Below are positions 13,203 to 41,937 of a stretch of DNA of 64,000 bases, one piece after another. Position numbers and translations under genes: made by a program. The stretch covers positions 22,878,001-22,942,000 of the forward strand of contig NC_088860.1 of assembly GCF_963853765.1 (NCBI RefSeq), written 5' to 3'. The notes under the pieces are model-generated. The model searched no databases and was not told where the DNA came from. It was given only the letters and a program-made list of their open reading frames with translations. Within the stretch, counting starts at the first letter, position 1, and every line of letters begins with the position of its first letter. This stretch comes from Magallana gigas. Taxonomy: Eukaryota.

Positions 13203-13713
13203 TTAGAAAAGTACTTGTTGATTTTACCTACAGATCTACGGATCACGTTTACAAAATTACGATCATGTAATCATCGATTCCCCATTGAAACAGGTAGATG
13301 GCATAATATTGAAAAACATTTAAGAAAATGTACAATGTGTGATTCTAATAGTATTGGGGATGAATTTCATTATATTTTAGAATGTACATATTTTGTAAAC
13401 GACAGAAAAATGTTTTTACCCAAGAGATATTATGAAAACCCAAATATGATAAAATTTAACGAGCTCATGAATACTTTTAATGTAGAAAAACTAAAAAACT
13501 TGTCAATATTTAATAAGAAAATTTTCAAAGTCTGTTCTTCCAGAAACCAACTTTAACAACCTATTGTATTGTGATTTTAACTTTTTTTTTGTCATTATTA
13601 CTTCTACTGTACATGTGATCCTTGACTGTATTCGTGTACATTTGTATATACTGATTTTGAACCTCAAATACTAGTGAACTGGTCTTGAGCGAATAAAGAA
13701 TTGAATTGAATTG
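13203..13713 (+). mobile_element. 5'-truncated non-LTR retrotransposon 3' end (RTE-X-like clade, inferred)
   Basis: Encodes LEKYL...KLRSCNHRFPIETGRW...RKCTMC....GDEFHYILEC, the C-terminal CCHC region of a LINE ORF2. AATAAA at 13692 is followed by a (TTGAA)n tail. ACACT is duplicated at 13198-13202 and 13714-13718. Confidence 0.85.
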
Positions 13714-13844
13714 ACACTCAATGACATATATATAAATTATACACCTAAATTCACAGGGGCATCGTATCCATTCTACTCTCTATGACATATATATAAATTA
13801 TACACCTTAATTCACAGAGGCATCGTATCCATTCTACACTCTAT

Positions 13845-13847
<3 letters not shown>

Positions 13848-13918
<71 letters not shown>
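13848..13918. repeat. (TA)n microsatellite
   Basis: Seen directly. Confidence 0.98.
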
Positions 13919-13922
<4 letters not shown>

Positions 13923-14327
13923 GCCGTACGAGTTAACAACGCGGGTTCAAATTTTCCTTTATTAACTCGGACGTCAATTTTTTAATTAGCTAATTAACTT
14001 AATCAGGCGTGAAATTGGCAGTCGATTGATTACTTTATAGCGATCGGCGACAGTATCAACACCTTTAAGAATGTGATCAAATGATGTGTATAATGTAGCT
14101 GTTCTTTTTCATAGTTTCTTAAGAAGTTTAGTAGTAGCTTTAGATTTTGCTTTCTTTGTTTTTCACTTATGTAATTTATTTTTTGGTCCTGAAGAAGGGA
14201 CGGGTTGTCCCGAAAATATGACAATTTCTATTGCTCGTGTCGTTAGCCATTTTTAGTGCTTTATATATTCAGTTTACTGGCTTAGTATCTATATATTAGA
14301 TCCGACACCTTAAAGATGCCTAGTGTT

Positions 14328-14462
14328 NNNNNNNNNNNNNNNNNNNNNNNNNNNNNNNNNNNNNNNNNNNNNNNNNNNNNNNNNNNNNNNNNNNNNNNNN
14401 NNNNNNNNNNNNNNNNNNNNNNNNNNNNNNNNNNNNNNNNNNNNNNNNNNNNNNNNNNNNNN
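14328..14462. other. Assembly gap (135 N)
   Basis: Run of N in the sequence. Confidence 1.
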
Positions 14463-17400
14463 CATAGAGTGTAGAATGGATACGATGCCCCTGTGGTCAA
14501 TCCTTTTGACTCGTCGCGGACAATTGTCGTGGATTAAAAAATACTTATGATTACGTATGATTGAATTTTTAAAAGGTCCAGTTGTAACGTAATGTATTTA
14601 AACTGAGTTTCTTTAACCATTAGTTTATGTACATGTGCATTGTTTTTTGTTACTGAACTCAATTTTAAGCTGAACATGACTCGTATTTAAATATGAAGAC
14701 CAATATTAACTTTGTTTAAATTTTTCTCCCATATCGACACTGGGGTATAATCACATTTTATTCACGGATTGTGTATTTTTTGTTTTACAATACTCGCCGT
14801 ACCTTCATTTAAGCATCAAACTTTTTCTTTTGTGATTCATGCGAGTATGAAGATAAACGTCGCTAGTATTGCAGAAAAAAAATATTGCAATTTAAATTGG
14901 AATTCGCAAATGTTATTAAACATCCTCAAAAATTACCACCAGTAATTGGCCAGCGTTGATATGCTTCTTATGCCAACTATGTTGAAATTTGGTCAACTCG
15001 AGCTTGAGCTCATTAAAATATTTAAAAATAGGTGTCAAGAGTGATTCTTACCATAATTCAATTGGCTTCCTCAAATGGTTGTGATAACTGTCATCTTGTA
15101 AATTAAATGCAAAATTTACAGCATAACAAGTTTTAAGTTGTAAATTTTGTATTTACTGCCATCCGGTAAATTGAAAATTTGCAACAAGACATAACAAACG
15201 GCTGAACAACAGCATTATATGTGTTTTATTAAACGAGTCCTGTTTCAATAAAAAATCTCGTAATTGTGGATTACAGTTATAAAGAATGACATAATAAAAA
15301 CTTAAATCATATATCTTGTTTCTCTTGCCTATCATGGTTAACTAAAAAATATCTAATGCTACGTCGAAATTTAATGCAATACGTAAAAAGCTGGATGGAT
15401 ATTTAGAAATTTTATTTCCAAAAGTCAAGATTATTTTTGTTGTTGTTAAAAATAGCCGTTATGTTTGTAAACTTTTCATTCAAATCATGTTTTTTTTCCT
15501 GTTTGTTAACGTTTTTAATGCTATTTAAAGAAATGAGCTCATTGAAACAAGTTATATTGATTGTCACGTGTCAATTTGTATCAGATGTGGTATAATTTAT
15601 TTTAATCAAATTACTTCATTTGCAAACAAAAACCTGACATGGTTTTGGTTACATAATAAATACTTCGGGAGCTCTGAATTATGTATCTCACATGCTGGAC
15701 TTGACTTAAGAGGATCATGAGAATCTTTCATTTATACCATTATCACGTCTTTAATTAACAAACACGTCCTTATTCAATTCTTAAGACAGCGAAATGGATG
15801 TATGTAGGTATTGGTAAGGCCGATTTCGAGTACCATCAGAAATTAATAAATAGCTAGCATCTCGAGTATACCAAACATATTGTGTACTTTATCGCATGGC
15901 ATGTACATTAGAAAAAGACAATACACAAATTATGTTATAATCATTACTTGCGTAATACATGTAAATAATAGTTTGTTTTGATATTTGAAAAAAAAAACAT
16001 GAAAATTTTATGACCATTGATCTATGTGATGTAAGAATACTTCCTTTGATTTCAGAATTTAAACGATTATTTATCATGGATGTAGCATTGTGATAAGTTT
16101 TTCAAGAGAGAATAACCCGTTGATGTTAAAACATTAAAAAATTAAAACAATCTCAATTAAATCATATATAGATTACTTGAATAGAATACAACATAAACTC
16201 ATAATAGTGTATCTTAACTATTGGTTGCCAAGGACAGAGACACAATATGGTGAAAGTTTGTTGCCAGCATTTTTTTTGTTGCCCCTTAGAGATTCGAAAC
16301 GGTGAGAAAATATAACTTGGATTAGACAAAAAAAGAGATTCGGAATAGTCAGATAGTCGTATCTGGAATGCTTAGATTAGACAGAGGTACAAAATAATGG
16401 GAAAGAAGAAGCCGAAATATTGGTGGTACATTTTTTTTCGCGAAAAAAAAATATGTAACGTAATATTAAAGCTGAGGTATAAACAATTCTAAATTAAATT
16501 GAAGGAATGGAGAAAAAGGCATTGACATGAAAAGTCAAACGCAGGAAAGGATGTCAGCTAGAATAGTACATAATTCATCTTGAACTGTTCATAGATTTTA
16601 ATAACGATGCAACTATTGAATAAAGTTACCTGAATTTGATACGATGTTTAATTAATCATAAGACCTGATGATCGCTAAATCTTATCTAATAACTAAACGT
16701 ACATGTCTGTATTAAGTGTTAATGAGATGAGAATGTGATGATTTTGATTTTGGACAAATCCCCTTCGAAGATTGCGGAATCGATCGATGACGTCACGTAA
16801 CTGTTAATTTAAAACTCTCAGCTTCATTACGAGGATGATAGAAAGGCGGAGATCATGAAAAGCACATACAGCAAACAGGGTTGAGATAGCTGTTGCCAAA
16901 GGTTGGTGAAAACTAACATTCTATGTTCTTCGCAAAAAAAAAAAAAAATTATGATTATTAATTTTTCAATTTCAAATGTGATGTACTGTATATGTTTAAT
17001 GTTTAAGCCTGGTAAGCGCCTTTGCTTTTTCTTATAGATTTAATTAAGGTCATCGTTCGATCAGATAATTAGTTTTGGTTCGTTCTGATTCAAAATATTT
17101 TCCAAGTGGATATTGCCAGATAAAAGGTCGAATAATAAGGGGGAATGTAACTTTGCCCATTTAGAAGCATGACCTTTGATGATAAAACGTTTACTTCTAA
17201 GGAATATAGTTTGTTTTTTAACAAACAGTACATATACAATAATAAATACAAGATAGCGTATGAATATAAATCTTAAGTTATAGTTCCAAAAATTTACTGA
17301 TTACATGTATATGCTAAAATGCGCATACAAGCATTATTCTGGCCAATTTAATATCTCCACACAGTGAATTAATAAAAAAAAATGTCATTTCAAGGATTAT

Positions 17401-17597: not shown

Positions 17598-20500
17598 ATG
17601 GTGTTTTTCAAGAAGAGAGGCCAAATCCGGCCGTCGTCCAAAATGGGACAGTCCATAAATAGTTCCATGGGGTCCATGACGCCGTCCCAACTTAACACTC
17701 TCATCATGGACATGCTGAGTCTGCCTCAATCGGAGAACGCCTGCAAGACACTGTGTAGAGGTGAGAGTTCAACAAAGAATCTGTGTCCGGGTCCTTTAAA
17801 TGAGCTCGTTGGTCGTGGCCATATTTAGACCACTTTGATCTTCTTGAGAAAGAGAGTTCTACATTTTGATTTAGGAGAATTATCAAATTTTAAAGCTTTA
17901 TTATTTGGATTTTTTCTTTACTAATGTTAGTTTATTGTCAAAAATACCATATGCCAAAGTGTAAGACAAATCTGATGGTAAGTGTGTTGACCACTAATGA
18001 CCTGCCTCCTTAATAAGATAAATAGACAAAAGCAATGCCGTAAACAAAATCATGCTTAAAAATGCGTTAAACAGTAAAAAATATCCTGGTAAAAAACAAT
18101 CCGTTTCAATCCACTCTGATGATTTCAATGAACTATGTTAACACAGCTATTTGAACGGTAGTTGATGATAATTGCAGTTGACCTTCATGTTTTATTTTTA
18201 ACTTACAAAAAAAATTCAAAGCCTAAAACAGAAGTAGAAAATACCAATTCCTTCTGTTTATGTAAACTCTTCTAGGCACCATGCATAATAGATAATGAAA
18301 CATAAAATGCTACATGTAATATGATTCAGATTGTCTTTTTGTTTAGGTATTTGTGTCTGCCAGATTTTTTGAAAAAATTGCCTTTAACATGAAATGCATC
18401 ATACTTTAAAATCATTGTTTTAATCTGTGATTTCTATTCTTAGTTAAGGAAACAAATATATTTTAAATATGAGTTTAGTTTATACTATCAAATTTGATAT
18501 ATATTATGAATTGCTTGTACATAACTCAGACCAAGAATCTCTACCCCCCCCCCCCCCCCAAAATGAAATTTTTTACTTTAATGCAAAATAAATTCATCTC
18601 ATGCACTTATGCTTTAATCTTAATGTCTTTTTGCTAATATTGGCCAGACCAAGGGCTTGCTATTTATGTTTTTGAATTATATATTTCACATTTAAGGAGG
18701 ATGATTCGGGTTTTTGCGTAAAAAATACATTTACAATAGGAATACATAGGAAATTGTCATTTTCCACATTTCGAGGCCGATTTGAAAAAAAAACTACAAT
18801 AGCGATTTTACTTAAATTGTGAAATGTGATTATCAATATCATTTTCTTAATTCTACCATCTGGTTTTTAATGGGGCTCATCTCAAAATATCAAAACATTA
18901 AAACTGAAGAAAATATCACTATATTTTGATATATATTTAGAGCATTAAAAATGTTTATTTGTACAATGGATTCATTCAAAAATTGAGGAAAATCTTAATC
19001 ATAATTCTTGAACAAAAATGTCAAAGGCGCACACTTTTTACTTTTTTAAATGTTATTTCATATAACGTACTCCTACAAAGCTTCATTTTATCATAACGTC
19101 ATAAAAGCACAGTGGCAACGCTCACCTACAGTACAACGGAAATTTATTTAAAAAATTAAATTTTCGGTAAAAAATCTGAAAAATTCTCAACTGTTATTTG
19201 TTTATTATGTTCTATTTCATTAATAGTTTTGAAACGATTTCATAAAGGGTATAAATACATTGTATTTACTATATTGCGCAAAAACATTCGCAATGATAAA
19301 AAATTAATCTACTTCGCTGAGGTAGTTGAACTCTATACACTAAAGGAACACAAGTGTACAAATAAACAGAAAAAAAACGGGCGCCACAAGTAGACATTTG
19401 ATTTTATGTTAATTCCATTTTTTGTCAACATTGTTTTCTATATAATAAATGGCTTGAACAATTTAAAATTTAAATCATGACAAAATTAATAAGGATACAA
19501 ATAATAAGATATATACAAACAAAATTTACGATAAAGACATGGACAATTTTAGAAAAATTGCTTTTTTAGACAACCCAATTACCAATTCTGGAAAACGAAA
19601 GCAGCTGTTGAAAATGCTATTGATTGTGCTCCTCCCCATGGGGATCCTGGTGGGAATGATGTCCAATGTGTTTGTTTCCGTCCTGAAGAACTATGTCGAG
19701 TCGTCTGAAATCCGGAGTTCTCTGTTCTTCTCGTAAGTGACCAATCATTACAAAAAACATGCCACCGCCTCTTGTGGGTGTAAATGGGCACGTTTAAAGC
19801 GTGTGTTAACAGGACTCGATATATGTCTGTTGTTTACATTGATTTAATATACTAGTAAACGTTCTTTTCTGACTGATTTTTCTATCTGCTAAATTCGTTG
19901 TGAACAGAAATAAACAGTTTCTAGCATGTGCCACATACATGTATACTAGTATTTAAAGCATTAACCTTGAATTTTCTTTTCAACATTCAAAATGTTAACA
20001 AAAACATGACATGAACTTTGTTTTTATAACATATATTTGTAAACTCTATCAATATATAATATATATTAATATAGTATTGTATCTTGCTTATAACTCGACC
20101 ACTGACATTCAAATTACTACTACCTTATACCTACCAACTAGTTCGTCCAATTCATAACGTACTGATGACTTGTAAGCATGTTCCTACATTCGCTTCCTCT
20201 GCAAAAATATACCCGAGTCATGCAAGATTATTCAAACTTATTAATTTACGCCTGTCACAGACAGACAATCGTTAATAAGGAAATAAACAGCAAGTTAAAA
20301 AAGTTCACCGGGGTGTGAACTTGGTTGGTCCTGTGGTGAAATCCTGTTCGTGAGGCCCGAAGGCCTTCTTAGAAGATTTGATCACATACCAACCAAGTTC
20401 ATATCCCGATTAACTTTTTAACATTGCTGTTTATTACTTATATTTTCATTTGAAAAGGGCAAACCAATAAGAGCTGTCAAAATTACCAAGATTTTATGTA

Positions 20501-22627
20501 TACAATAATCCAACCAACCGCTTGAGCATTATGATCATTGTGACGTCATGAAAAAGTTAAATTAGTACAGAAGTGAACGTTTCCTAATTCTGTAGGTTCA
20601 TACAAGGAATCATATTTGCAAATCTGTACATTTAAACAATGTAATGCTTTCTTTGGTGATTTATGCGGGATAGGAAGGTGGCACCTTTGCTAGCCAAAGG
20701 TCTTCGTTCCACTCCGTTCCCCATTATGGGAAGCGGAGTGGACCGAAAACTCTTGGCTAGGAAGGCGGCGACATTGCAGAAAAAATACATAACATGCGTT
20801 AACGTGTTATAAAATTTTTTATTCGCTGTCTTCATAACCTGCATGAATCTTCAAAGAAAGCATTTATTGTTCATATTTACATCTTTCTTTTAACAAATAG
20901 TAATATATAAAATGATTGTAAAAAGTAAGTAAAACTAACTAAATTACTGTTAAAGTACATCAGTACTTTAGCTAAAAAAAAAAAGTCAAATCGTCTCCTA
21001 TGAGAATTTGAGTCTGACATCATCATTATCATTTCTTGCAATCCGTGAGTTTTCTCAGGTCGCTGTAGGTTTCGACCAATCGACAATGGGGCGTGTAGAT
21101 TTCAGTTTTGTCAGTTTCTACAAATTATGAATAAGTTTCCGTAAGAAATAGAGGGAATCATACTCAAAAGATGTAAAAATATAGCAAGTATGTAATTTGA
21201 ATCGAAATAAATTATAAAACTATTACCGCCATTACTAACGGCCCCCACTATGCTTACTTGTGTAATATGTGCCACATAAAAATATATATATTTCTAATCT
21301 TTTTAATTGACATTTTACATGATACAAGTGGTTTTGATATTTTTGTTAGTGGGTTCTAAGGAGCAAAGTTTGGACAAACAACTTCAAACATGATACAAAA
21401 ATGACACTATTATTTTACTTTTTAACAACTTACACGATGTCATATTTTCAGTATCGAGCTCGGTCAAATGATGCGGTATCTGCAAAGAGAACGCGACATG
21501 AGCGCCCTCTATGTAAGCGCCATTGGTATGGAGACCAAGAACCTACTACTTCGACGGTACCCAGAAACTGACGCGGCGGTCGACAACATGTCGTACTGGC
21601 CAGTCAGGATGAGTAACAAACGGCTCGAATTTCAGTCTAAGGACAAATTCCTGCTGTACCTCAACCGACATAGGTATCAGCTGGACCAAATGCAAAACAG
21701 AACCTCTAAACAGGAGATCGAGTTCTACACCAGCCTGATAGATGTGTTCATCTTGTGGCTGTACGAAAGTGTGTCCGAGTCCCGGAGCGGTGCAATATGG
21801 AAGACGTTGGTGGCCTATCAGGAGATTATCGTAGCCAGTGAACACATCGGGCGAGAACGAGGCTTAGGCGTGACCTATTTTGCAAAAGGTGGATTTGATA
21901 CCAAAGAGGATTACTTACTTTTTTTGGAAGCTCAAATCAACTCCAATATCAGTTTTCAATCTTGTAAACGCTACTCTGATCTTGCATATCAGATGCATGA
22001 GGAACAGCTTAAAAGTAAGAATGAACTGCTGGTCCAGATAACCAGCCTGAGATTGATGATACGCTCCAACAAGAGCAGCATCCAACTAAATGCGTCTCTG
22101 GAAATGGCCAATTACTGGTTTGAAAACATGACCTACTATCAGGAGACAGTCAGAGAAACGCAGAAGAAACTGGCAGAGAAAATTGACAAACAGCTGACAA
22201 TCCGAGAAAACGAAGACCTGGAGGTAATCGTGTCGATCAGTTGTATCTTTGCTGCTGTTATGATCATCTGTCCATTGGTAGTTACTGGCGTCTACAAGCT
22301 AACTGTCCAGATACAAAACTACTCAGTGACTATTGCAAACAGGTTGGTCTTCTCTTTTTTTTCATTTAAGATAGGTTGAAATAGGAAAACAATGTGCATG
22401 ATTTCATGATGTGCGACTGTGTAATTGTAGAACAAAAGCCTTGAACAAAGAGAAAAAGAGAACTGACACTTTGCTCTACCAGATGTTACCTAAGTCGGTG
22501 GCAGAGCGACTGAAGAGCAATGAAGTGGTAGAGGCTGAGCACTTTCCAGAGGCGACCATCTTCTTCAGCGACATCGTGGGCTTCACCAAAATAGCATCCT
22601 CAAGCTCACCATATCAGGTTTTTCGCA

Positions 22628-22668
<41 letters not shown>

Positions 22669-24656
22669 CACACATCATTCTGTCCATATCTCAATGTCTT
22701 TCATCTTTTCTTTTTCTTTGGTCAATCCAATCATTCTTTTTTCCCTTTTCATTAGATGATTTTTCCTTTTATTAAGGTGGTCGATATGTTAAACAATCTG
22801 TACACGTGCTTTGATGGGAGGATAGATACGTATGATGTGTATAAGGTGGAGACCATAGGTGACGCCTACATGGTTGTTTCGGGTGAGCTCCCCTTTTTTT
22901 AAATTTACGAACATGTAGAGCGTTATTTTTATACTCCCCCCCTTGCAAAAACAATCTCGAATTTTTTATTTTTAGCGAAGTGTAACAATGCTTACTAAAT
23001 TTTAATATTTTGTTGTTTCCTACTGATACCAAAAATGCAGCTTTACAAATAGTGTCCTTACAATAATACATTTAAAATAGAAACATATGCACTGAACACT
23101 CGATGCACGCTTGTGCTTCACTTTTTTGCCAGCAACGTTATAATATTCTTTTACACAAATTCAGTCATAATATCATGAAAAAAGATTACATTAAAACCAG
23201 TAGAAATTAAACTAGCTTAAGTTATAAAAAGACGCACTGTATTGTTATCTAGTCCGAGCTTTCCTTATAAAATCTTATGATGAAGAAGTGGTCCCCTTCC
23301 AGAGTAAATGAAATGATTAACCTACTGATTAAAAAAATGCCTCTTTTTTTAAACAGTTGATACCTGCGTTTGTTAATTGACAGGTGTCCCTCGACCGAAC
23401 GGAAATCGACATGCTGCGGAAATAGCGTCCATGGCGCTAGACTTGGAGCGCACTGTCAAGGACGTGGAAATTCCTCATTTGCCCGGGATGACCTTCAGTC
23501 TGCGTATTGGTTGCCATACTGGTATGTAATATTGGAACAGTTTATTTTCTAATTCCAAACGATTCTGAATCTAAAAGAATTCACTTATCTAAGTATTAAT
23601 AAAACTATAAAATATTGATAAATCACATATGTCAGTTCTCTTTGGGCTAATCGGCAAACAAAATTTGAGTTTCATTCGTCAAGTTATATGCGAGTTAAAG
23701 AGCTTAAAAGTTTTTGCAACGTAAACAAAGCTTTTGTTTATACTATGAATGTTGAAGTGAAAATCCTGCTTTAGACCTAAACTGAATGTGTTAAACGTTA
23801 GGAACTATTTATTTATGCTTAAAATGAATAAGAAGATAGACAAATCAGCATGAAAAAAGATTTTTTTAATGGTACATGTATATTGAACTTATGTAAACAA
23901 AAACAGGGGACGAGCCTTGTTTACTAGTACATGACAGAGAATTGTGAGCCCTGTATCTTGCTTATATCTCTACTTATATATGACTCTCAAATTTCATTTG
24001 ATCATTAGAAATGTATTCCTAAAGCATTGTAAATAATAAAAAAAGAAAAATAGAATTTGACCAAAATCGTGACCATGCCCCTTTAAGTGGACGGGCCAAA
24101 ACGGCTGCCAGACCCATCTCAAAATATTTTGACAAGCTAATTGAAATGTAAGAAAATAGTGCACGTGAAAGAGCCTTTATATTTTTTGTATATGAATTTA
24201 AGACAGCTTGGGCCGATGTCCAAAATAAAAAACTAAAGGGTTCACTCTACCTAACACAGTCCATTGTTGCTATTGGATAAAGGTTATCTAAGATATGCCA
24301 TATAAGTGATCAAATGGTAATTTTAACTTCACTTTTTGACCCCCGACAACAGGTCAAGTGGTAGCAGGTGTCGTGGGAACTAAGATGCCAAGATACTGCC
24401 TCTTTGGCGATACTGTCAACACAGCCTCTAAGATGGAGTCCTTGGGAAAGGGTATGTACCTGGTTCCTGAATGGAATCGCCCAATCTTTTTGCTGACACT
24501 ATAAATAAAAGGTTAAAAAAGCAATGGTTGTCATTGATAGAAAGTATTATGTCTTCATTCAAAGCGAACAAGATTCACATCAGCCAGACGACATACGATA
24601 TTTTGCTATCCATTGGCGGGTTCAAGATGACGGAACGTTTGGATGAAAGTGTTCAG

Positions 24657-24736
<80 letters not shown>

Positions 24737-24899
24737 AATGTCAAGCATAGTATGTGCTTGAAATAAATTTTTTCTTCCTTTTAAATTTTAGGAGGACCTG
24801 GATTTAAAAAATCACTTTAAAGGAACTTTTCAAACTTACTGGCTTTTGGGATCCATGAAGTTTCCCGCCGATGAGAGATCAACAATGTCAGATGAGTAA
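17598..24899 (+). CDS. NIT-domain membrane guanylate cyclase, copy 1 (648 aa, 9 coding exons)
   Basis: Exons 17598-17760, 19570-19732, 21452-22342, 22431-22617, 22777-22882, 23384-23521, 24353-24451, 24565-24656, 24792-24899; all GT-AG, 1947 nt in frame. TM1 ([16 protein letters not shown]) precedes a NIT-type region ([39 protein letters not shown]). TM2 ([19 protein letters not shown]) precedes the signalling helix ([14 protein letters not shown]) and a class III cyclase with GTP-specific motifs ([33 protein letters not shown]). Confidence 0.92.
20275..20441. mobile_element. Palindromic non-autonomous element (about 165 bp)
   Basis: Long imperfect inverted arms (ATAAG.AATAAACAGCAA.TTAAAAA.GTT..CGGG.T.TGAACTTGGTTGGT) surround a central AGGCC-CGAA-GGCCT hairpin. 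Confidence 0.7.
20634..21185 (+). mobile_element. About 550-bp non-autonomous element with terminal palindrome, copy 1
   Basis: Palindrome at 20634-20871 followed by an AT-rich spacer and body. It aligns by eye along its whole length with the inverted copy at about 41465-41937 (e.g. AAATCGTCT..TGAGA.TTTGAGTCTGACATCAT, GGTCGCTG.AGGTTT.GACCAATCGA, GTAAGAAATAGAGGGAAT). Confidence 0.72.
20690..20760. mobile_element. 71-bp fully palindromic mini-element nested in the 20634 element
   Basis: CTAGCCAAAGGTCTTCGTTCCACTCCGTTCCC-loop-GGGAAGCGGAGTGGACCGAAAACTCTTGGCTAG; absent from the homologous copy at 41.8 kb. Confidence 0.6.
22631..22666. repeat. (TC)n microsatellite in NIT-GC1 intron 4
   Basis: Seen directly. 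Confidence 0.98.
23704..24086. mobile_element. Partial TTAA-flanked MITE (Kolobok-like, inferred)
   Basis: Ends in TTTGACCAAAATCGTGACCATGCCCCT followed by TTAA, a terminus I recognise from bivalve non-autonomous elements. The other end is truncated. Confidence 0.45.
24660..24735. repeat. (GA)n microsatellite abutting the splice donor of NIT-GC1 exon 8
   Basis: CAG|GTAAGAGAGAGA...; explains the spurious ER-repeat ORF at 24471-24761. Confidence 0.98.
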
Positions 24900-38700: not shown

Positions 38701-40495
38701 TTGGTTATTCCACAAGGTGGTCGATATGTTGAACAGTCTGTACACGTGCTTTGACGAAAGGATAGAAATGTATGATGTGTACAAGGTGGAGACCATTGGT
38801 GACGCCTACATGGTAGTGTCAGGTACGTACTTACTGTGGGAAGTTAGAATTGTATAATTAAAGTGAAAGTTTCGGATGACCAAAAGGACCAAAGTCCATG
38901 TTTATCGCTTTTTGTGTTCTTAAGAGCGAAACTTTCGTTTATTCCTCTTATTAAACAAAAAAAATTGACGTTTTGTTTGACATTCATTTACATGTAAAAT
39001 ACAACAACAGGTGTTCCGAGGCATAATGGAAAACAGCATGCCTCAGAAATAGCAAAGATGGCGTTTGACCTCGTTAGAAGACTACGACATTTAGAAATAC
39101 CGCATCTCCCCGGCATAAAGTTCACTCTCCGCATCGGCTGCCACTCTGGTAGGCATTTGTTTAAAAATGGCTCCCTTGTTATGTTTGATTGTTTCCCTGT
39201 TATTCTGCAACTACATATATATAGTTACTGTCGTCCTTTTCCTGCTTTAGGCACAGTTGTTGCAGGAGTGGTGGGAAACAAGATGCCGAGGTATTGTTTG
39301 TTTGGGGAGACTGTGAGTGTTGCCTCCAAAATGGAATCTCTCGGAAAAGGTAAGCTGTTCGAATCCGATTTAAAAATGTCCATAAATATAATAATTTTGC
39401 GATGCCAAAATGTCATTTGGTATTAAAATTGAGCAGCTGTATAGGTTATTAATTATGACTTACTATAACATGTATTATTTATGCAGCCAACAAAATACAC
39501 TTGAGTGAGACTACATACGATATCTTGACATCTATTGGAGGATTTACAATGCATGAAAGAAAGGATAACATAGCCAAGGTGTGGATTTAATAGCAAAATC
39601 TAGTATTCTAAAAAATATTAGGATAAAGCCCTTTTTTAAAAATAGAAATCAGTTTAATGCTTTGAATGTTCATTACTGAATATAGTATACCTTTATGTAC
39701 AGAACGACCCGGATCTACAGAACGCATTTAAGGGAATCGTGCGCACGTACTGGCTGGCGGAAGTGGACGGCACGGAGCCGGACACCGACTCTGTGCAGAC
39801 CGAGCCCGAGGAGCCGCACGAGAGAGTAGCAGGTGAGGCCCAAAACGGCGCGAGGGGAACGTGCCCAAGCTCGATATTAGCCGCGGGTCCGTAGCTCCTA
39901 TGCGTAAAAATTTGGTAGATCAGGGCATAAACCCGAATTTCTCAGTACAGCTAAAAATCTGCATCTAGCTCGACATCTGCTTAAAGAATGTAAGTTATCA
40001 ATAGCTACTTAATAATCAATTTTATATTTTTTTTTAGGGGGGGGGGTGTCTAAAATATTTTTTTCTTGCATAATTTTTTTTAAAAATTATCTTGGGGTGG
40101 GATACGGAGTTTCGGTTATCATATCATAAGTATCATGGTTCATCTTTAATGATTTTATCATAAATTTTTTTTTTCCAAAGATAGCATGGTTTGACGTGAA
40201 ATGTTTTTTTTCTCGATAATTTCCGGAGAGTACGGACATATGCGAATTTAGTTTACAACACCACATTTAAAATGACACACATAATTACATGTATTAAAAT
40301 GTCATTTTCATGTAAAAAACAAAAAAAAACAAAAAAACAAAAACAAAACCTCCTGTGCATAGTTGTAGAATAACATGATAATAAAAGTTGTTAATACCAT
40401 CGATTAACAATATCTTAATTGACATATTCCTCTGATACATTTTAATGGTTTACCTTTATTTTTTTTCAGGCTCCAAAAGTTTCTGGCTACATTAA
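32737..40495 (+). CDS. NIT-domain membrane guanylate cyclase, copy 2 (663 or 675 aa)
   Basis: Exons 32737-32902, 33270-33432, 34051-34935, 38282-38468, 38717-38822, 39011-39148, 39251-39349, 39487-39578, then either 39703-39832 plus 40470-40495 or read-through 39703-39894. Intron phases are the same as copy 1 and internal exon sizes are identical (163/187/106/138/99/92). NIT, TM and cyclase motifs are shared, but the catalytic segment reads [17 protein letters not shown]. Confidence 0.92.
35200..38243 (+). mobile_element. pogo-family (DD35D) DNA transposon in NIT-GC2 intron 3
   Basis: Imperfect TIRs: left TAGTCGTGCGTGCCCTGTAGTCGTGCGC (35200-35227), right GCGCACGACTACTGGGCACACGAGGA followed by TA (about 38216-38243). 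An extra GCACGACTAC subterminal copy lies at 38021. Confidence 0.78.
35336..37701 (+). CDS. pogo transposase: psq-type HTH + CENP-B/Tc5 HTH + DDE_1 (DD35D) + C-terminal PHD finger (about 611 aa)
   Basis: The frame is open from the AG acceptor at 35880 ([15 protein letters not shown]...[22 protein letters not shown]) to TAG at 37701. A probable first exon is 35336-35350 (MRNKQ followed by gt). The triad is NVDEKG / LLLDGHRSH / LQPMDVG with 35 residues between D2 and D3. The C4HC3 motif runs CCICK...[13 protein letters not shown]...CPHC. Confidence 0.88.
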
Positions 40496-41464
40496 AAATA
40501 CGATATTCGAACACAATTTGCGTAAAATCAAGACAACATAATACATGTATATAACAAGATCAGTGTTGTTTGTATAATTATGTCCTCGCTTTGTTTATAT
40601 ATGTAGTGATGGATCTGTTTGTCCTCGTTTTTAACAAGTGCGTTTAAAATGCTTACATTTGATGAATTTTTTTCTCTCCACAATCGGATTTTTTTCTTCA
40701 GAATTTTCATTATTTACAATTACTATAGTATGATTTTATAAAGTTATTTCGAGCAGTTAACTACAAATTGAAATTACCTTTTTTTGTATATGTCTAGCTA
40801 AATGATTTTAAGCTTTGTAATTTTTTGATATTAAGAAAAGCAATTAAATTTGGAGGGACTTTCAAATTATATGTATTAACTTCTTTGTTTTGTTTTTTTT
40901 AACTTTTATATTATTATTTGTATGCGTGTTGTAAGAATTATCAAAACCTTTATAAGGTACATTAATTTGGAAGTGTATCTCCGTTAAGATAATTTTCTTG
41001 GTTATACAAGAATTTTTTTTAAAACTATGGTTGTCTTAACTTATTCATAGATGTACATTTATGTTTTGTATTCATTGTGTAAAGTATATGAAATAAAATT
41101 TTGTTTCAAAACTTGCATTGAAATCGGTTGACAAGACTTGATCAAATTTTTAGAGATTTTAAGACATTAGTTTACCAACATATTTAAAGACACCGTCGAA
41201 CGTGGCCAAATGTAAAGATCATTTTATTGTACAATACAAATCGTCCACCCTTTGGTTATTTTTTCTCATATAAACTAACTCATTTGTAGTTTTTTGAATA
41301 TTGAAAGACCTCTGTCAGCTCTCACGACTGTTTCGTTCGGATCTGATATCCCGTATATTATAGTTTTTGTGAACATCGCAGTCTTTATTTTTTCACTTGC
41401 CCTGGTATATCCTCAAAATATCCACGTCACCCAACCATGGCGTCATTTCCTAACTGTTGTGCAT

Positions 41465-41937
41465 AAACTAATATTTGCATCTACCAAGTATTATTCCCTC
41501 TATTTCTTACGAAAACTTATAGTTAATTCATAGCTCTATAGAAACAGTCAGACTGAAATATACACGCCCTGTTTATCGATTGGTCTAAACCTTCAGCGAC
41601 CTCAAAAAATCACGGACTACACAAAGTTATCATGATGTCAGACTCAAAGTCTCACAGCAGACGATTTGGCTGTTTCTTCTAGCTAACCTACTTATGTACA
41701 TTAACAGTAATTTAGTGATTTTTACTTTTTTTCCTAATCAATTTATTGAATAGTTAAAAGAGAGATGTTAAACAATATAAACAATAAAATGCTTTCTTTG
41801 ATGATTCATGCGGGTTATGAAGGTAGCGATCATTGCAAAAAAATTACATAACCCGCGTTAGCGGGTTATGTATTTTTTCTGCAATGTCACTACCTTCATA
41901 TCCCAAATGATTCCCCAAAGAAAGCATTTTATTGTTT
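41465..41937 (-). mobile_element. Non-autonomous element with terminal palindrome, copy 2 (inverted relative to 20634-21185)
   Basis: Palindrome at 41779-41937 centred on ACCCGC-GTTA-GCGGGT (41851-41866); spacer and body are homologous to copy 1. Confidence 0.72.

Follow-up and report, generated by a model that had tools for sequence, protein, structure and literature searches.

Two NIT-domain guanylate cyclase genes of Magallana gigas with alpha-like catalytic residues: candidate subunits of heterodimeric receptors

Introduction

The NIT-domain guanylate cyclases (NIT-GCs) are a recently recognized sensing route of marine invertebrates for nitric oxide or the products of its oxidation, and the family has been described in Placozoa (Trichoplax) and many bilaterians, with molluscs among the richest in such genes (Moroz et al., 2020, PMC7400543). 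One member, Platynereis NIT-GC1, makes cyclic GMP (cGMP) on its own in response to a nitric oxide donor, and its NIT domain is required for this (Jokura et al., bioRxiv 10.1101/2023.08.02.551600). Here we analyze a 64,000-nucleotide stretch of the Magallana gigas genome (RefSeq assembly GCF_963853765.1, contig NC_088860.1, positions 22,878,001 to 22,942,000 of the forward strand), hereinafter the window, from whose first letter all positions are counted. It holds two same-strand paralogs of NIT-domain receptor guanylate cyclase, which we call copy 1 and copy 2. Their architecture is that of the animal NIT-GCs of Trichoplax and Platynereis (NIT-GC1 and NIT-GC2), with a NIT domain between two membrane helices, a signaling helix and a class III cyclase domain; they fall in a subfamily with Lys in place of a catalytic Arg, here termed K-type. 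A first-pass annotation of the window likened copy 2 to the alpha subunit of soluble guanylate cyclase (sGC) and saw in it a possible obligate partner or regulator of copy 1, the pair having been born of their tandem duplication. That reading is partly supported: the alpha-like pattern is right, but its proposed origin and partner are not.

For the catalytic domain, the systems to compare are heterodimeric. In sGC, the alpha subunit keeps both metal-binding Asp residues, the phosphate-binding Arg and the base-specifying Glu and Cys and lacks the ribose-binding Asn and two phosphate-binding residues, whereas in the beta subunit the Asn, Arg and Lys are present and the first metal Asp and the phosphate Arg are missing (PMC6005667, Table 1). 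The former pattern is matched by the K-type NIT-GCs, and the latter by proteins of heterodonts and nemerteans that belong to a second NIT-GC clade. Unlike sGC, the window genes have no H-NOX or PAS domains, encode membrane proteins with a predicted extracellular NIT sensor, and do not group by descent with sGC alpha in the cyclase tree. The chytrid protein NeoR has Thr455 and Lys459 for the Asn and Arg of the NxxxR motif, keeps the Glu and Cys, is inactive alone and acts as an obligate partner; its heterodimers with RGC1 or RGC2, encoded by clustered genes, have one catalytic and one regulatory nucleotide site (PMC12264004). It resembles the K-type proteins in its replaced Asn/Arg pair, with Lys at the Arg site, and in its retained Glu/Cys, and differs from the window genes in being fungal and in its rhodopsin sensor. 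DAF-11 and ODR-1 of C. elegans form a membrane receptor cyclase that is described as an obligate heterodimer, each monomer giving essential residues to a single site (PMC5225109). Unlike the window genes, these are classical receptor cyclases that possess a kinase-homology domain and differ in their extracellular domain; the likeness drawn here lies in their being a heterodimeric membrane receptor. Neither the Trichoplax nor the Platynereis paper treats degeneracy of the catalytic residues or heterodimers of NIT-GCs; the word heterodimer is applied in the former to the PDZ domains of nitric oxide synthase only (PMC7400543) and is absent from the latter preprint.

Results and discussion

Two NIT-GC paralogs with incomplete catalytic sets

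A six-frame self-comparison of the window recovered two collinear exon sets on the forward strand, whose protein products are 69% identical (coordinates in Table 2). Pfam scans found in both, in this order, a NIT domain, the end of HNOBA (the signaling helix) and PF00211 (exons d to g), and no kinase-like domain in either. The match to PF08376 covers nearly the entire profile within a single 0.9-kb exon, and that to HNOBA is limited to the last 26 profile positions. Membrane helices, called from Kyte-Doolittle windows above 2.0, lie on either side of the NIT domain (residues 67-85 and 367-385 in copy 1; 68-92 and 367-385 in copy 2), and gene models of 648 and 663 residues leave no space for a kinase-homology domain. 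Since NIT and PF00211 occur with nothing kinase-like and with a hydrophobic pair around the NIT domain, both genes are members of the animal NIT-GC family, with transmembrane-NIT-transmembrane-coiled coil-cyclase architecture and without the kinase-homology domain. In trees they group with named NIT-GC proteins, and their nearest relatives all combine PF08376 and PF00211.

The residues that set the two copies apart lie in exon g (39251-39349 in copy 2), which is bounded by an AG acceptor and a GT donor and whose first two bases finish the Gly codon of the preceding exon; the exon at 24353-24451 in copy 1 has the same structure. In an ungapped HMMER alignment of copy 2 exon g to GC-A, GC-C and Chlamydomonas CYG12, Ser stands opposite the Asn and Lys opposite the Arg of the NxxxR motif. 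Hence the ribose Asn(6), present in copy 1, is Ser in copy 2, and the transition-state Arg(7) is Lys in both. The first-pass annotation had described these substitutions correctly in every detail, and the gene models likewise bear out its statement that both copies retain the metal Asp pair and the base Glu/Cys (PRYC). Also kept in both are the phosphate Arg(4) and the C-terminal Lys(8) of F-K-G.

When the presence in one chain of all eight catalytic residues of PMC6005667 Table 1 is taken as the canonical standard, neither copy is complete, copy 2 being without Asn(6) and Arg(7) and copy 1 without Arg(7). Nor are the two complementary: Asp(1), Asp(3) and Arg(4) are present in each of them, and Arg(7) is missing from each. 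Judging from these residues, a copy 1/copy 2 dimer would carry one Asn/Lys site, one Ser/Lys site and zero canonical sites. The proposal that copy 1 is the beta-like complement of copy 2 therefore does not hold, as copy 1 too has Lys for Arg and keeps both metal Asp residues. The likeness of the copy 2 pattern to that of non-catalytic partner subunits does stand (sGC alpha, PMC6005667; NeoR, PMC12264004).

We surveyed the motif by comparing copy 2 exons f and g with 1.84 billion representative proteins and scoring the nearest 150. Asn/Arg accounted for 130 of the 150 occurrences, and 12 had Lys at the Arg site, nearly all of them in NIT-GC-sized proteins or fragments. A private variant or an assembly error as the source of Ser/Lys, which the first-pass annotation had named as a possible undoing of its reading, is ruled out: two Saccostrea cucullata orthologs and many molluscs carry the same Glu-Ser-Lys motif (naming in order the residue two positions after the Gly, that at the Asn site and that at the Arg site), and the Lys is found across phyla.

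Catalytic constraint within the K-type subfamily

By their motif and their relatives, both genes belong to an old lophotrochozoan subfamily, the K-type, in which Lys takes the place of the Arg of NxxxR and, in most cases, Ser or Thr that of the Asn. We scored the eight positions of PMC6005667 Table 1 on a cyclase-domain alignment of 60 K-type proteins (molluscs, nemerteans, Lingula and Capitella) and 101 other NIT-GCs (Table 1). The metal-side residues of the K-type, that is the two Asp and the Arg of LRIG, are almost invariant, as are the Glu and Cys, and the residues that the opposite chain would supply (Asn, Arg and Lys) vary freely. Strongly degenerate cases are one Mytilus group, where the Asn site has Arg and the Arg site has Leu or Ile, and one scallop group, with Ser or Asn at the former and Met or Ala at the latter; the metal side is kept in both groups. 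Glu in place of Asp two residues after the Gly is found in 38 of the 60 K-type proteins as against 9 of the 101 others.

Table 1. Retention of the eight catalytic residues in K-type and other NIT-GCs
Residue	K-type	Other NIT-GCs
Asp(1)	58/60	96/101
Glu(2)	58/60	100/101
Asp(3)	59/60	90/101
Arg(4)	59/60	98/101
Cys(5)	59/60	99/101
Asn(6)	20/60	95/101
Arg(7)	7/60	89/101
Lys(8)	29/50 alignable	84/95 alignable

This lopsided retention is our main argument. In a homodimer the loss of positions 6 to 8 would disable both sites and leave no reason to keep positions 1, 3 and 4. The near-invariance of Asp(1), Asp(3) and Arg(4) argues that the K-type chain may give its metal site to a partner. Our best explanation, which we hold tentatively and rate at somewhat under an even chance, is that both window genes encode alpha-like subunits of heterodimeric NIT-GCs, the partners being encoded elsewhere in the genome. 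K-type subunits, the two window genes included, would be poor or inactive as homodimers and would work in the manner of sGC alpha or NeoR, by pairing with an Asn/Arg-bearing NIT-GC from another locus. The competent site would take its metal Asp residues and Arg(4) from the K-type chain and its Glu, Cys, Asn, Arg and Lys from the partner; the second site, being degenerate, would bind GTP, perhaps in a regulatory role. On this view, the two window genes would be alternative alpha-like subunits with different NIT sensors rather than an alpha/beta pair.

A similar split was seen between neighboring clades of deuterostome NIT-GCs (echinoderm and hemichordate; example proteins P0212, P0279, P0281, P0284-P0287 and P0352 versus P0012, P0268 and P0271). 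One clade has the second metal Asp changed to Glu with Asn/Arg intact, and the other has Glu-Asn-Lys with both Asp residues intact.

A second molluscan clade as the possible partner

A second molluscan NIT-GC clade, of about 700 residues, keeps the Asn/Arg/Lys almost everywhere. In two of its heterodont lineages Asp(1) and Arg(4) have been lost together with Asp(3) kept: one (Mya, Mercenaria, Ruditapes and Dreissena) has Ser at Asp(1) and Leu, Met or Lys at Arg(4), and the other (Mactra and Ruditapes) has Gly at Asp(1) and Gln at Arg(4). Nemertean relatives have Gly at Asp(1), and some caenogastropods have Glu there. Proteins that keep Asn/Arg/Lys and have lost the first metal Asp include P0317, P0324, P0323, P0331, P0322, P0342, P0300 and P0296 from heterodonts, in which the phosphate Arg is gone as well, and P0218, P0344 and P0298 from nemerteans. 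K-type genes of the Glu-Asn-Lys form are present in every sampled heterodont species. The sampled oyster members of the second clade come from Saccostrea echinata, where P0325 is canonical and P0299 is of the Asn/Arg type with Lys at Arg(4). In Haliotis rufescens (JALGQA010000105.1), a Glu-Ser-Lys NIT-GC (P0183, 1-6133, reverse strand) and a canonical Asn/Arg member of the second clade (P0304, 10001-30272, forward strand) are divergent, head-to-head neighbors with 3.9 kb between them, and could be a co-regulated pair.

On the strength of these residue patterns we put forward, more guardedly still, the wider possibility that lophotrochozoan NIT-GCs independently evolved an sGC-like two-subunit enzyme. 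In it the K-type chain would donate the metal site and the second clade the Asn/Arg/Lys, overtly beta-like in heterodonts, such that two NIT sensors would act on one catalytic and one regulatory site. The family-wide pattern of alpha-like and beta-like NIT-GCs may be new, as no paper in the literature searched links NIT-GCs to heterodimers or degenerate catalytic residues.

Polarity of the motif and history of the duplication

Word searches seeded with the nearest full-length matches gave about 250 named NIT-GCs. Polarity was read from an outgroup-rooted maximum-likelihood tree of 65 full-length proteins and also from the states of the nearest outgroups. Copy 2 and two S. cucullata proteins, all Glu-Ser-Lys, form one group (support 100/100). 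Copy 1 forms another with proteins of C. gigas, C. virginica and S. echinata (100/100), which are Asp-Asn-Lys but for Asp-His-Lys in C. virginica. The two groups are sisters (100/99), and the next outgroup, also Glu-Ser-Lys, is Pinctada (97/97). Further out stand Tegillarca, a group from Mytilus, C. virginica P0160 as a third oyster lineage, and a clade of gastropods (Haliotis, Elysia, Aplysia, Patella and Lottia), almost all of them Glu-Ser-Lys. The motif is Glu-Thr/Ser-Lys in nemerteans; Lingula combines Ser with Arg, and a chiton Thr with Arg.

As Glu-Ser-Lys occurs in every lineage that brackets the oyster duplication, the Asp and Asn of copy 1 are derived on this tree. The Glu-Ser-Lys of copy 2 is thus an old state common across molluscs and older than the duplication, and copy 1 reverted to Asp-Asn after the oyster-lineage duplication with its Lys retained. 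For the Asn, a single non-synonymous change suffices (Ser AGT to Asn AAC). The asymmetry that the first-pass annotation ascribed to this tandem duplication accordingly predates it, and the chief value of the analysis for that observation is a correction, with Ser/Lys ancestral and copy 1 derived. On the question of fixation across bivalves, the Ser/Lys of copy 2 is shared by Saccostrea, Pinctada, Tegillarca and Mytilus, but the Asn of copy 1, being His in the C. virginica ortholog, is not firmly fixed. The Asn/Lys groups of scallops, of heterodonts and of one Mytilus gene arose separately; a constraint that unites all Asn/Lys forms as one clade, a group defined after the tree was seen, was rejected (log-likelihood difference 713; approximately unbiased test p about 1e-180).

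A conserved tandem arrangement was not found in the S. echinata and S. cucullata loci. The S. echinata ortholog of copy 1 has no NIT-GC neighbor within 10 kb. The S. cucullata stretch L002 holds two copy 2-like genes (263-4154, reverse; 10001-16716, forward) whose proteins are 89% identical; they lie head to head, as opposed to the same-strand order of copy 1 and copy 2, and the stretch examined is without a copy 1 ortholog.

Weighing the explanations

Several points weigh against reading the two genes as alpha-like subunits. The case for the K-type NIT-GCs is drawn from sequence, and the counts over the 60 K-type and 101 other proteins of Table 1 cover clusters with common ancestry and are therefore not independent events. 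Lys keeps the charge of Arg, and Ser or Thr keeps a hydrogen-bonding group, such that homodimers may retain activity. Platynereis NIT-GC1 is active alone, and the preprint gives no sequence from which its motif type could be read (bioRxiv 10.1101/2023.08.02.551600). In NeoR the restoration of Asn and Arg left activity unrestored (PMC12264004), which means that these two residues alone do not decide competence. As for the partner, adjacency of the two types was seen in Haliotis only; it was sought and not found in Mya, where they lie 3.6 Mb apart, and linkage is therefore not general. Within the partner clade, beta-like degeneration is confined to particular lineages (heterodonts, nemerteans and some caenogastropods), and none was found in the sampled oyster members, one of which is fully canonical and could homodimerize.

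These points bear most directly on the view that K-type NIT-GCs, including both window genes, are self-sufficient homodimers, with Lys at the alpha-phosphate, Ser, Thr or Asn at the ribose, and a lower or differently tuned turnover. We consider this unlikely, though it is the strongest of the competing accounts. The substitutions are conservative, and the remaining catalytic residues are intact, among them the Glu/Cys and, as far as the two window genes go, the C-terminal Lys. The Ser and Lys are conserved over gastropods and bivalves, and are hence constrained rather than drifting, and the Glu that most Lys-bearing members have at the second position past the Gly could compensate for the substitutions; the solitary activity of Platynereis NIT-GC1 would fit as well, subject to its motif type. 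However, a homodimer makes it hard to explain why several K-type lineages (Mytilus, scallops) are far more degenerate at the Asn, Arg and Lys and yet keep the metal Asp residues and Arg(4). Moreover, Thr/Lys is the pair found in the inactive partner NeoR, both residues are missing from sGC alpha (PMC12264004, PMC6005667), and the Arg is deemed crucial for transition-state stabilization in the work of Yan et al. (1997) as cited in PMC12264004. If the K-type chains are instead devoid of a productive site with any partner, they would be non-catalytic modulators that sequester canonical subunits or signal without cGMP synthesis. The Asn/Arg/Lys side is degenerate throughout the clade, and NeoR-type subunits are inactive alone (PMC12264004), both of which would suit such a role, but the near-invariance of the metal Asp pair and Arg(4) (58-59 of 60) argues for a part in catalysis somewhere, and we regard this as the most improbable of the explanations. 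Hardly more probable, in our estimation, is the pairing proposed in the first-pass annotation, in which copy 2 would be the obligate partner or regulator of its neighbor copy 1 in an alpha/beta-like heterodimer born of tandem duplication. The genes are same-strand neighbors, the same two RNA-like runs contain sequences from each, and the signaling-helix exon is about 86% identical between them, which makes mixed dimers plausible; with the Asn regained by copy 1, these would have one Asn/Lys and one Ser/Lys site. Against it, the Ser/Lys is older than the duplication, copy 1 has both metal Asp residues but not the Arg so that there is no complementary loss, its Asn gives way to His in C. virginica, and the two Saccostrea species offer no conserved tandem.

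Were the alpha-like reading true, single-gene expression assays of many NIT-GCs would give false negatives. To our knowledge, Platynereis NIT-GC1 is the sole NIT-GC to have been assayed. Co-expression of paralogs would then set ligand specificity combinatorially, with two different NIT sensors per heterodimer, and the class III cyclases would have reached the alpha/beta division of labor at least once more, beside the transmembrane adenylyl cyclases, sGC, NeoR/RGC and DAF-11/ODR-1.

Transcription and selection

Both genes are transcribed in the same samples, cell-level overlap being a separate matter. For copy 2, contigs of the RNA-like runs X1 and X8, the latter carrying a different organism's label, span the splice joints 39147 to 39250 and 39347 to 39485 at GT..AG. 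All exons from the NIT exon to exon i are so joined in the X8 contigs, and the X1 contig is without the last joint only. The last junction of the gene is inferred from a loose contig end at 39833 that matches the sequence from 40471 on. Within 39251-39349 there is no differing letter among the better-supported differences, 38 weaker ones standing apart from these. For copy 1 the basis is one loose-end junction sequence, in which contig ends of X1 and X8 match 19713-19732 and run on into the start of the NIT exon (the exon b/c junction), together with an identical Logan-derived protein. The copy 1 model equals P0171 at 100% and C. gigas XP_011415968.1 at 99.7%. A full-length C. gigas copy 2 protein was absent from two word searches, which returned only short fragments with the same motif (P0008, P0059), and no mention of LOC105319933 was found in the literature searched.

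Both open reading frames are intact. Against the Saccostrea orthologs, synonymous sites are saturated and the non-synonymous divergence (dN) is 0.11-0.14 for both genes, which indicates purifying selection on the pair. When copy 1 was compared with copy 2 in relative-rate tests, the results were inconsistent, with p from 0.002 to 0.91 according to the outgroup.

In copy 2, a 3.3-kb intron separates the NIT exon from exon d. Contigs of X6, a metatranscriptomic run, cover it at 35200-38250, as do a few raw X21 reads foreign to the spliced mRNA; they probably stem from repeats or other transcripts.

Gene structures and other features of the window

The gene models and their principal exons are collected in Table 2.

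Table 2. Coordinates of the two NIT-GC genes in the window
Feature	Position	Strand	Remarks
Copy 1 gene	17598-24899	+	9 coding exons, 648 aa, AG/GT at all boundaries
Copy 1 exons	17598-17760, 19570-19732, 21452-22342, 22431-22617, 22777-22882, 23384-23521, 24353-24451, 24565-24656, 24792-24899	+	
Copy 1 NIT sensor exon and second membrane helix	21452-22342	+	PF08376 NIT, E 2e-26
Copy 1 exon d: signaling helix and first metal Asp	22431-22617	+	
Copy 1 exon e: Glu and second metal Asp	22777-22882	+	
Copy 1 exon g	24353-24451	+	PF00211, E 5.8e-13; Asn (codon AAC), Lys at Arg site (codon AAG)
Copy 2 gene	32737-40496	+	10 coding exons, 663 aa, AG/GT boundaries throughout
Copy 2 exons	32737-32902, 33270-33432, 34051-34935, 38282-38468, 38717-38822, 39011-39148, 39251-39349, 39487-39578, 39703-39832, 40470-40496	+	
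Copy 2 NIT sensor exon and second membrane helix	34051-34935	+	PF08376 NIT, E 1.1e-27
Copy 2 exon d: signaling helix, cyclase domain start, first metal Asp (FFSDIVGF)	38282-38468	+	HNOBA end and PF00211
Copy 2 exon e: base-specifying Glu and second metal Asp (KVETIGDAY)	38717-38822	+	
Copy 2 exon f: phosphate-binding Arg in LRIGCH, equivalent of sGC alpha Arg574 (PMC6005667, Table 1)	39011-39148	+	
Copy 2 exon g	39251-39349	+	PF00211, E 9.5e-12; base Cys, Ser (codon AGT) at ribose-Asn site, Lys (codon AAA) at phosphate-Arg site

The spacer between the two genes contains, at 26726-27916 on the forward strand, an open reading frame of 396 residues with matches to QRICH1 (E 7e-15) and a truncated DUF3504 (E 3e-13), which extends into a CT microsatellite and looks like a transposon-derived or domesticated gene fragment. 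A weaker, diverged copy of it lies upstream of copy 1 at about 10792-11590. The similarity at 10792-11590 and 27152-28098 was considered as an upstream exon of the cyclase genes, but this is ruled out, the similarity being that of the QRICH1/DUF3504 reading frame itself. An inverted similarity links 20635-21180, in the intron before the NIT exon of copy 1, with 41471-41936 downstream of copy 2, and is probably a dispersed repeat. In copy 1, CT and GA microsatellites begin immediately past the splice donors of exons d and h (22620-22680 and 24657-24720).

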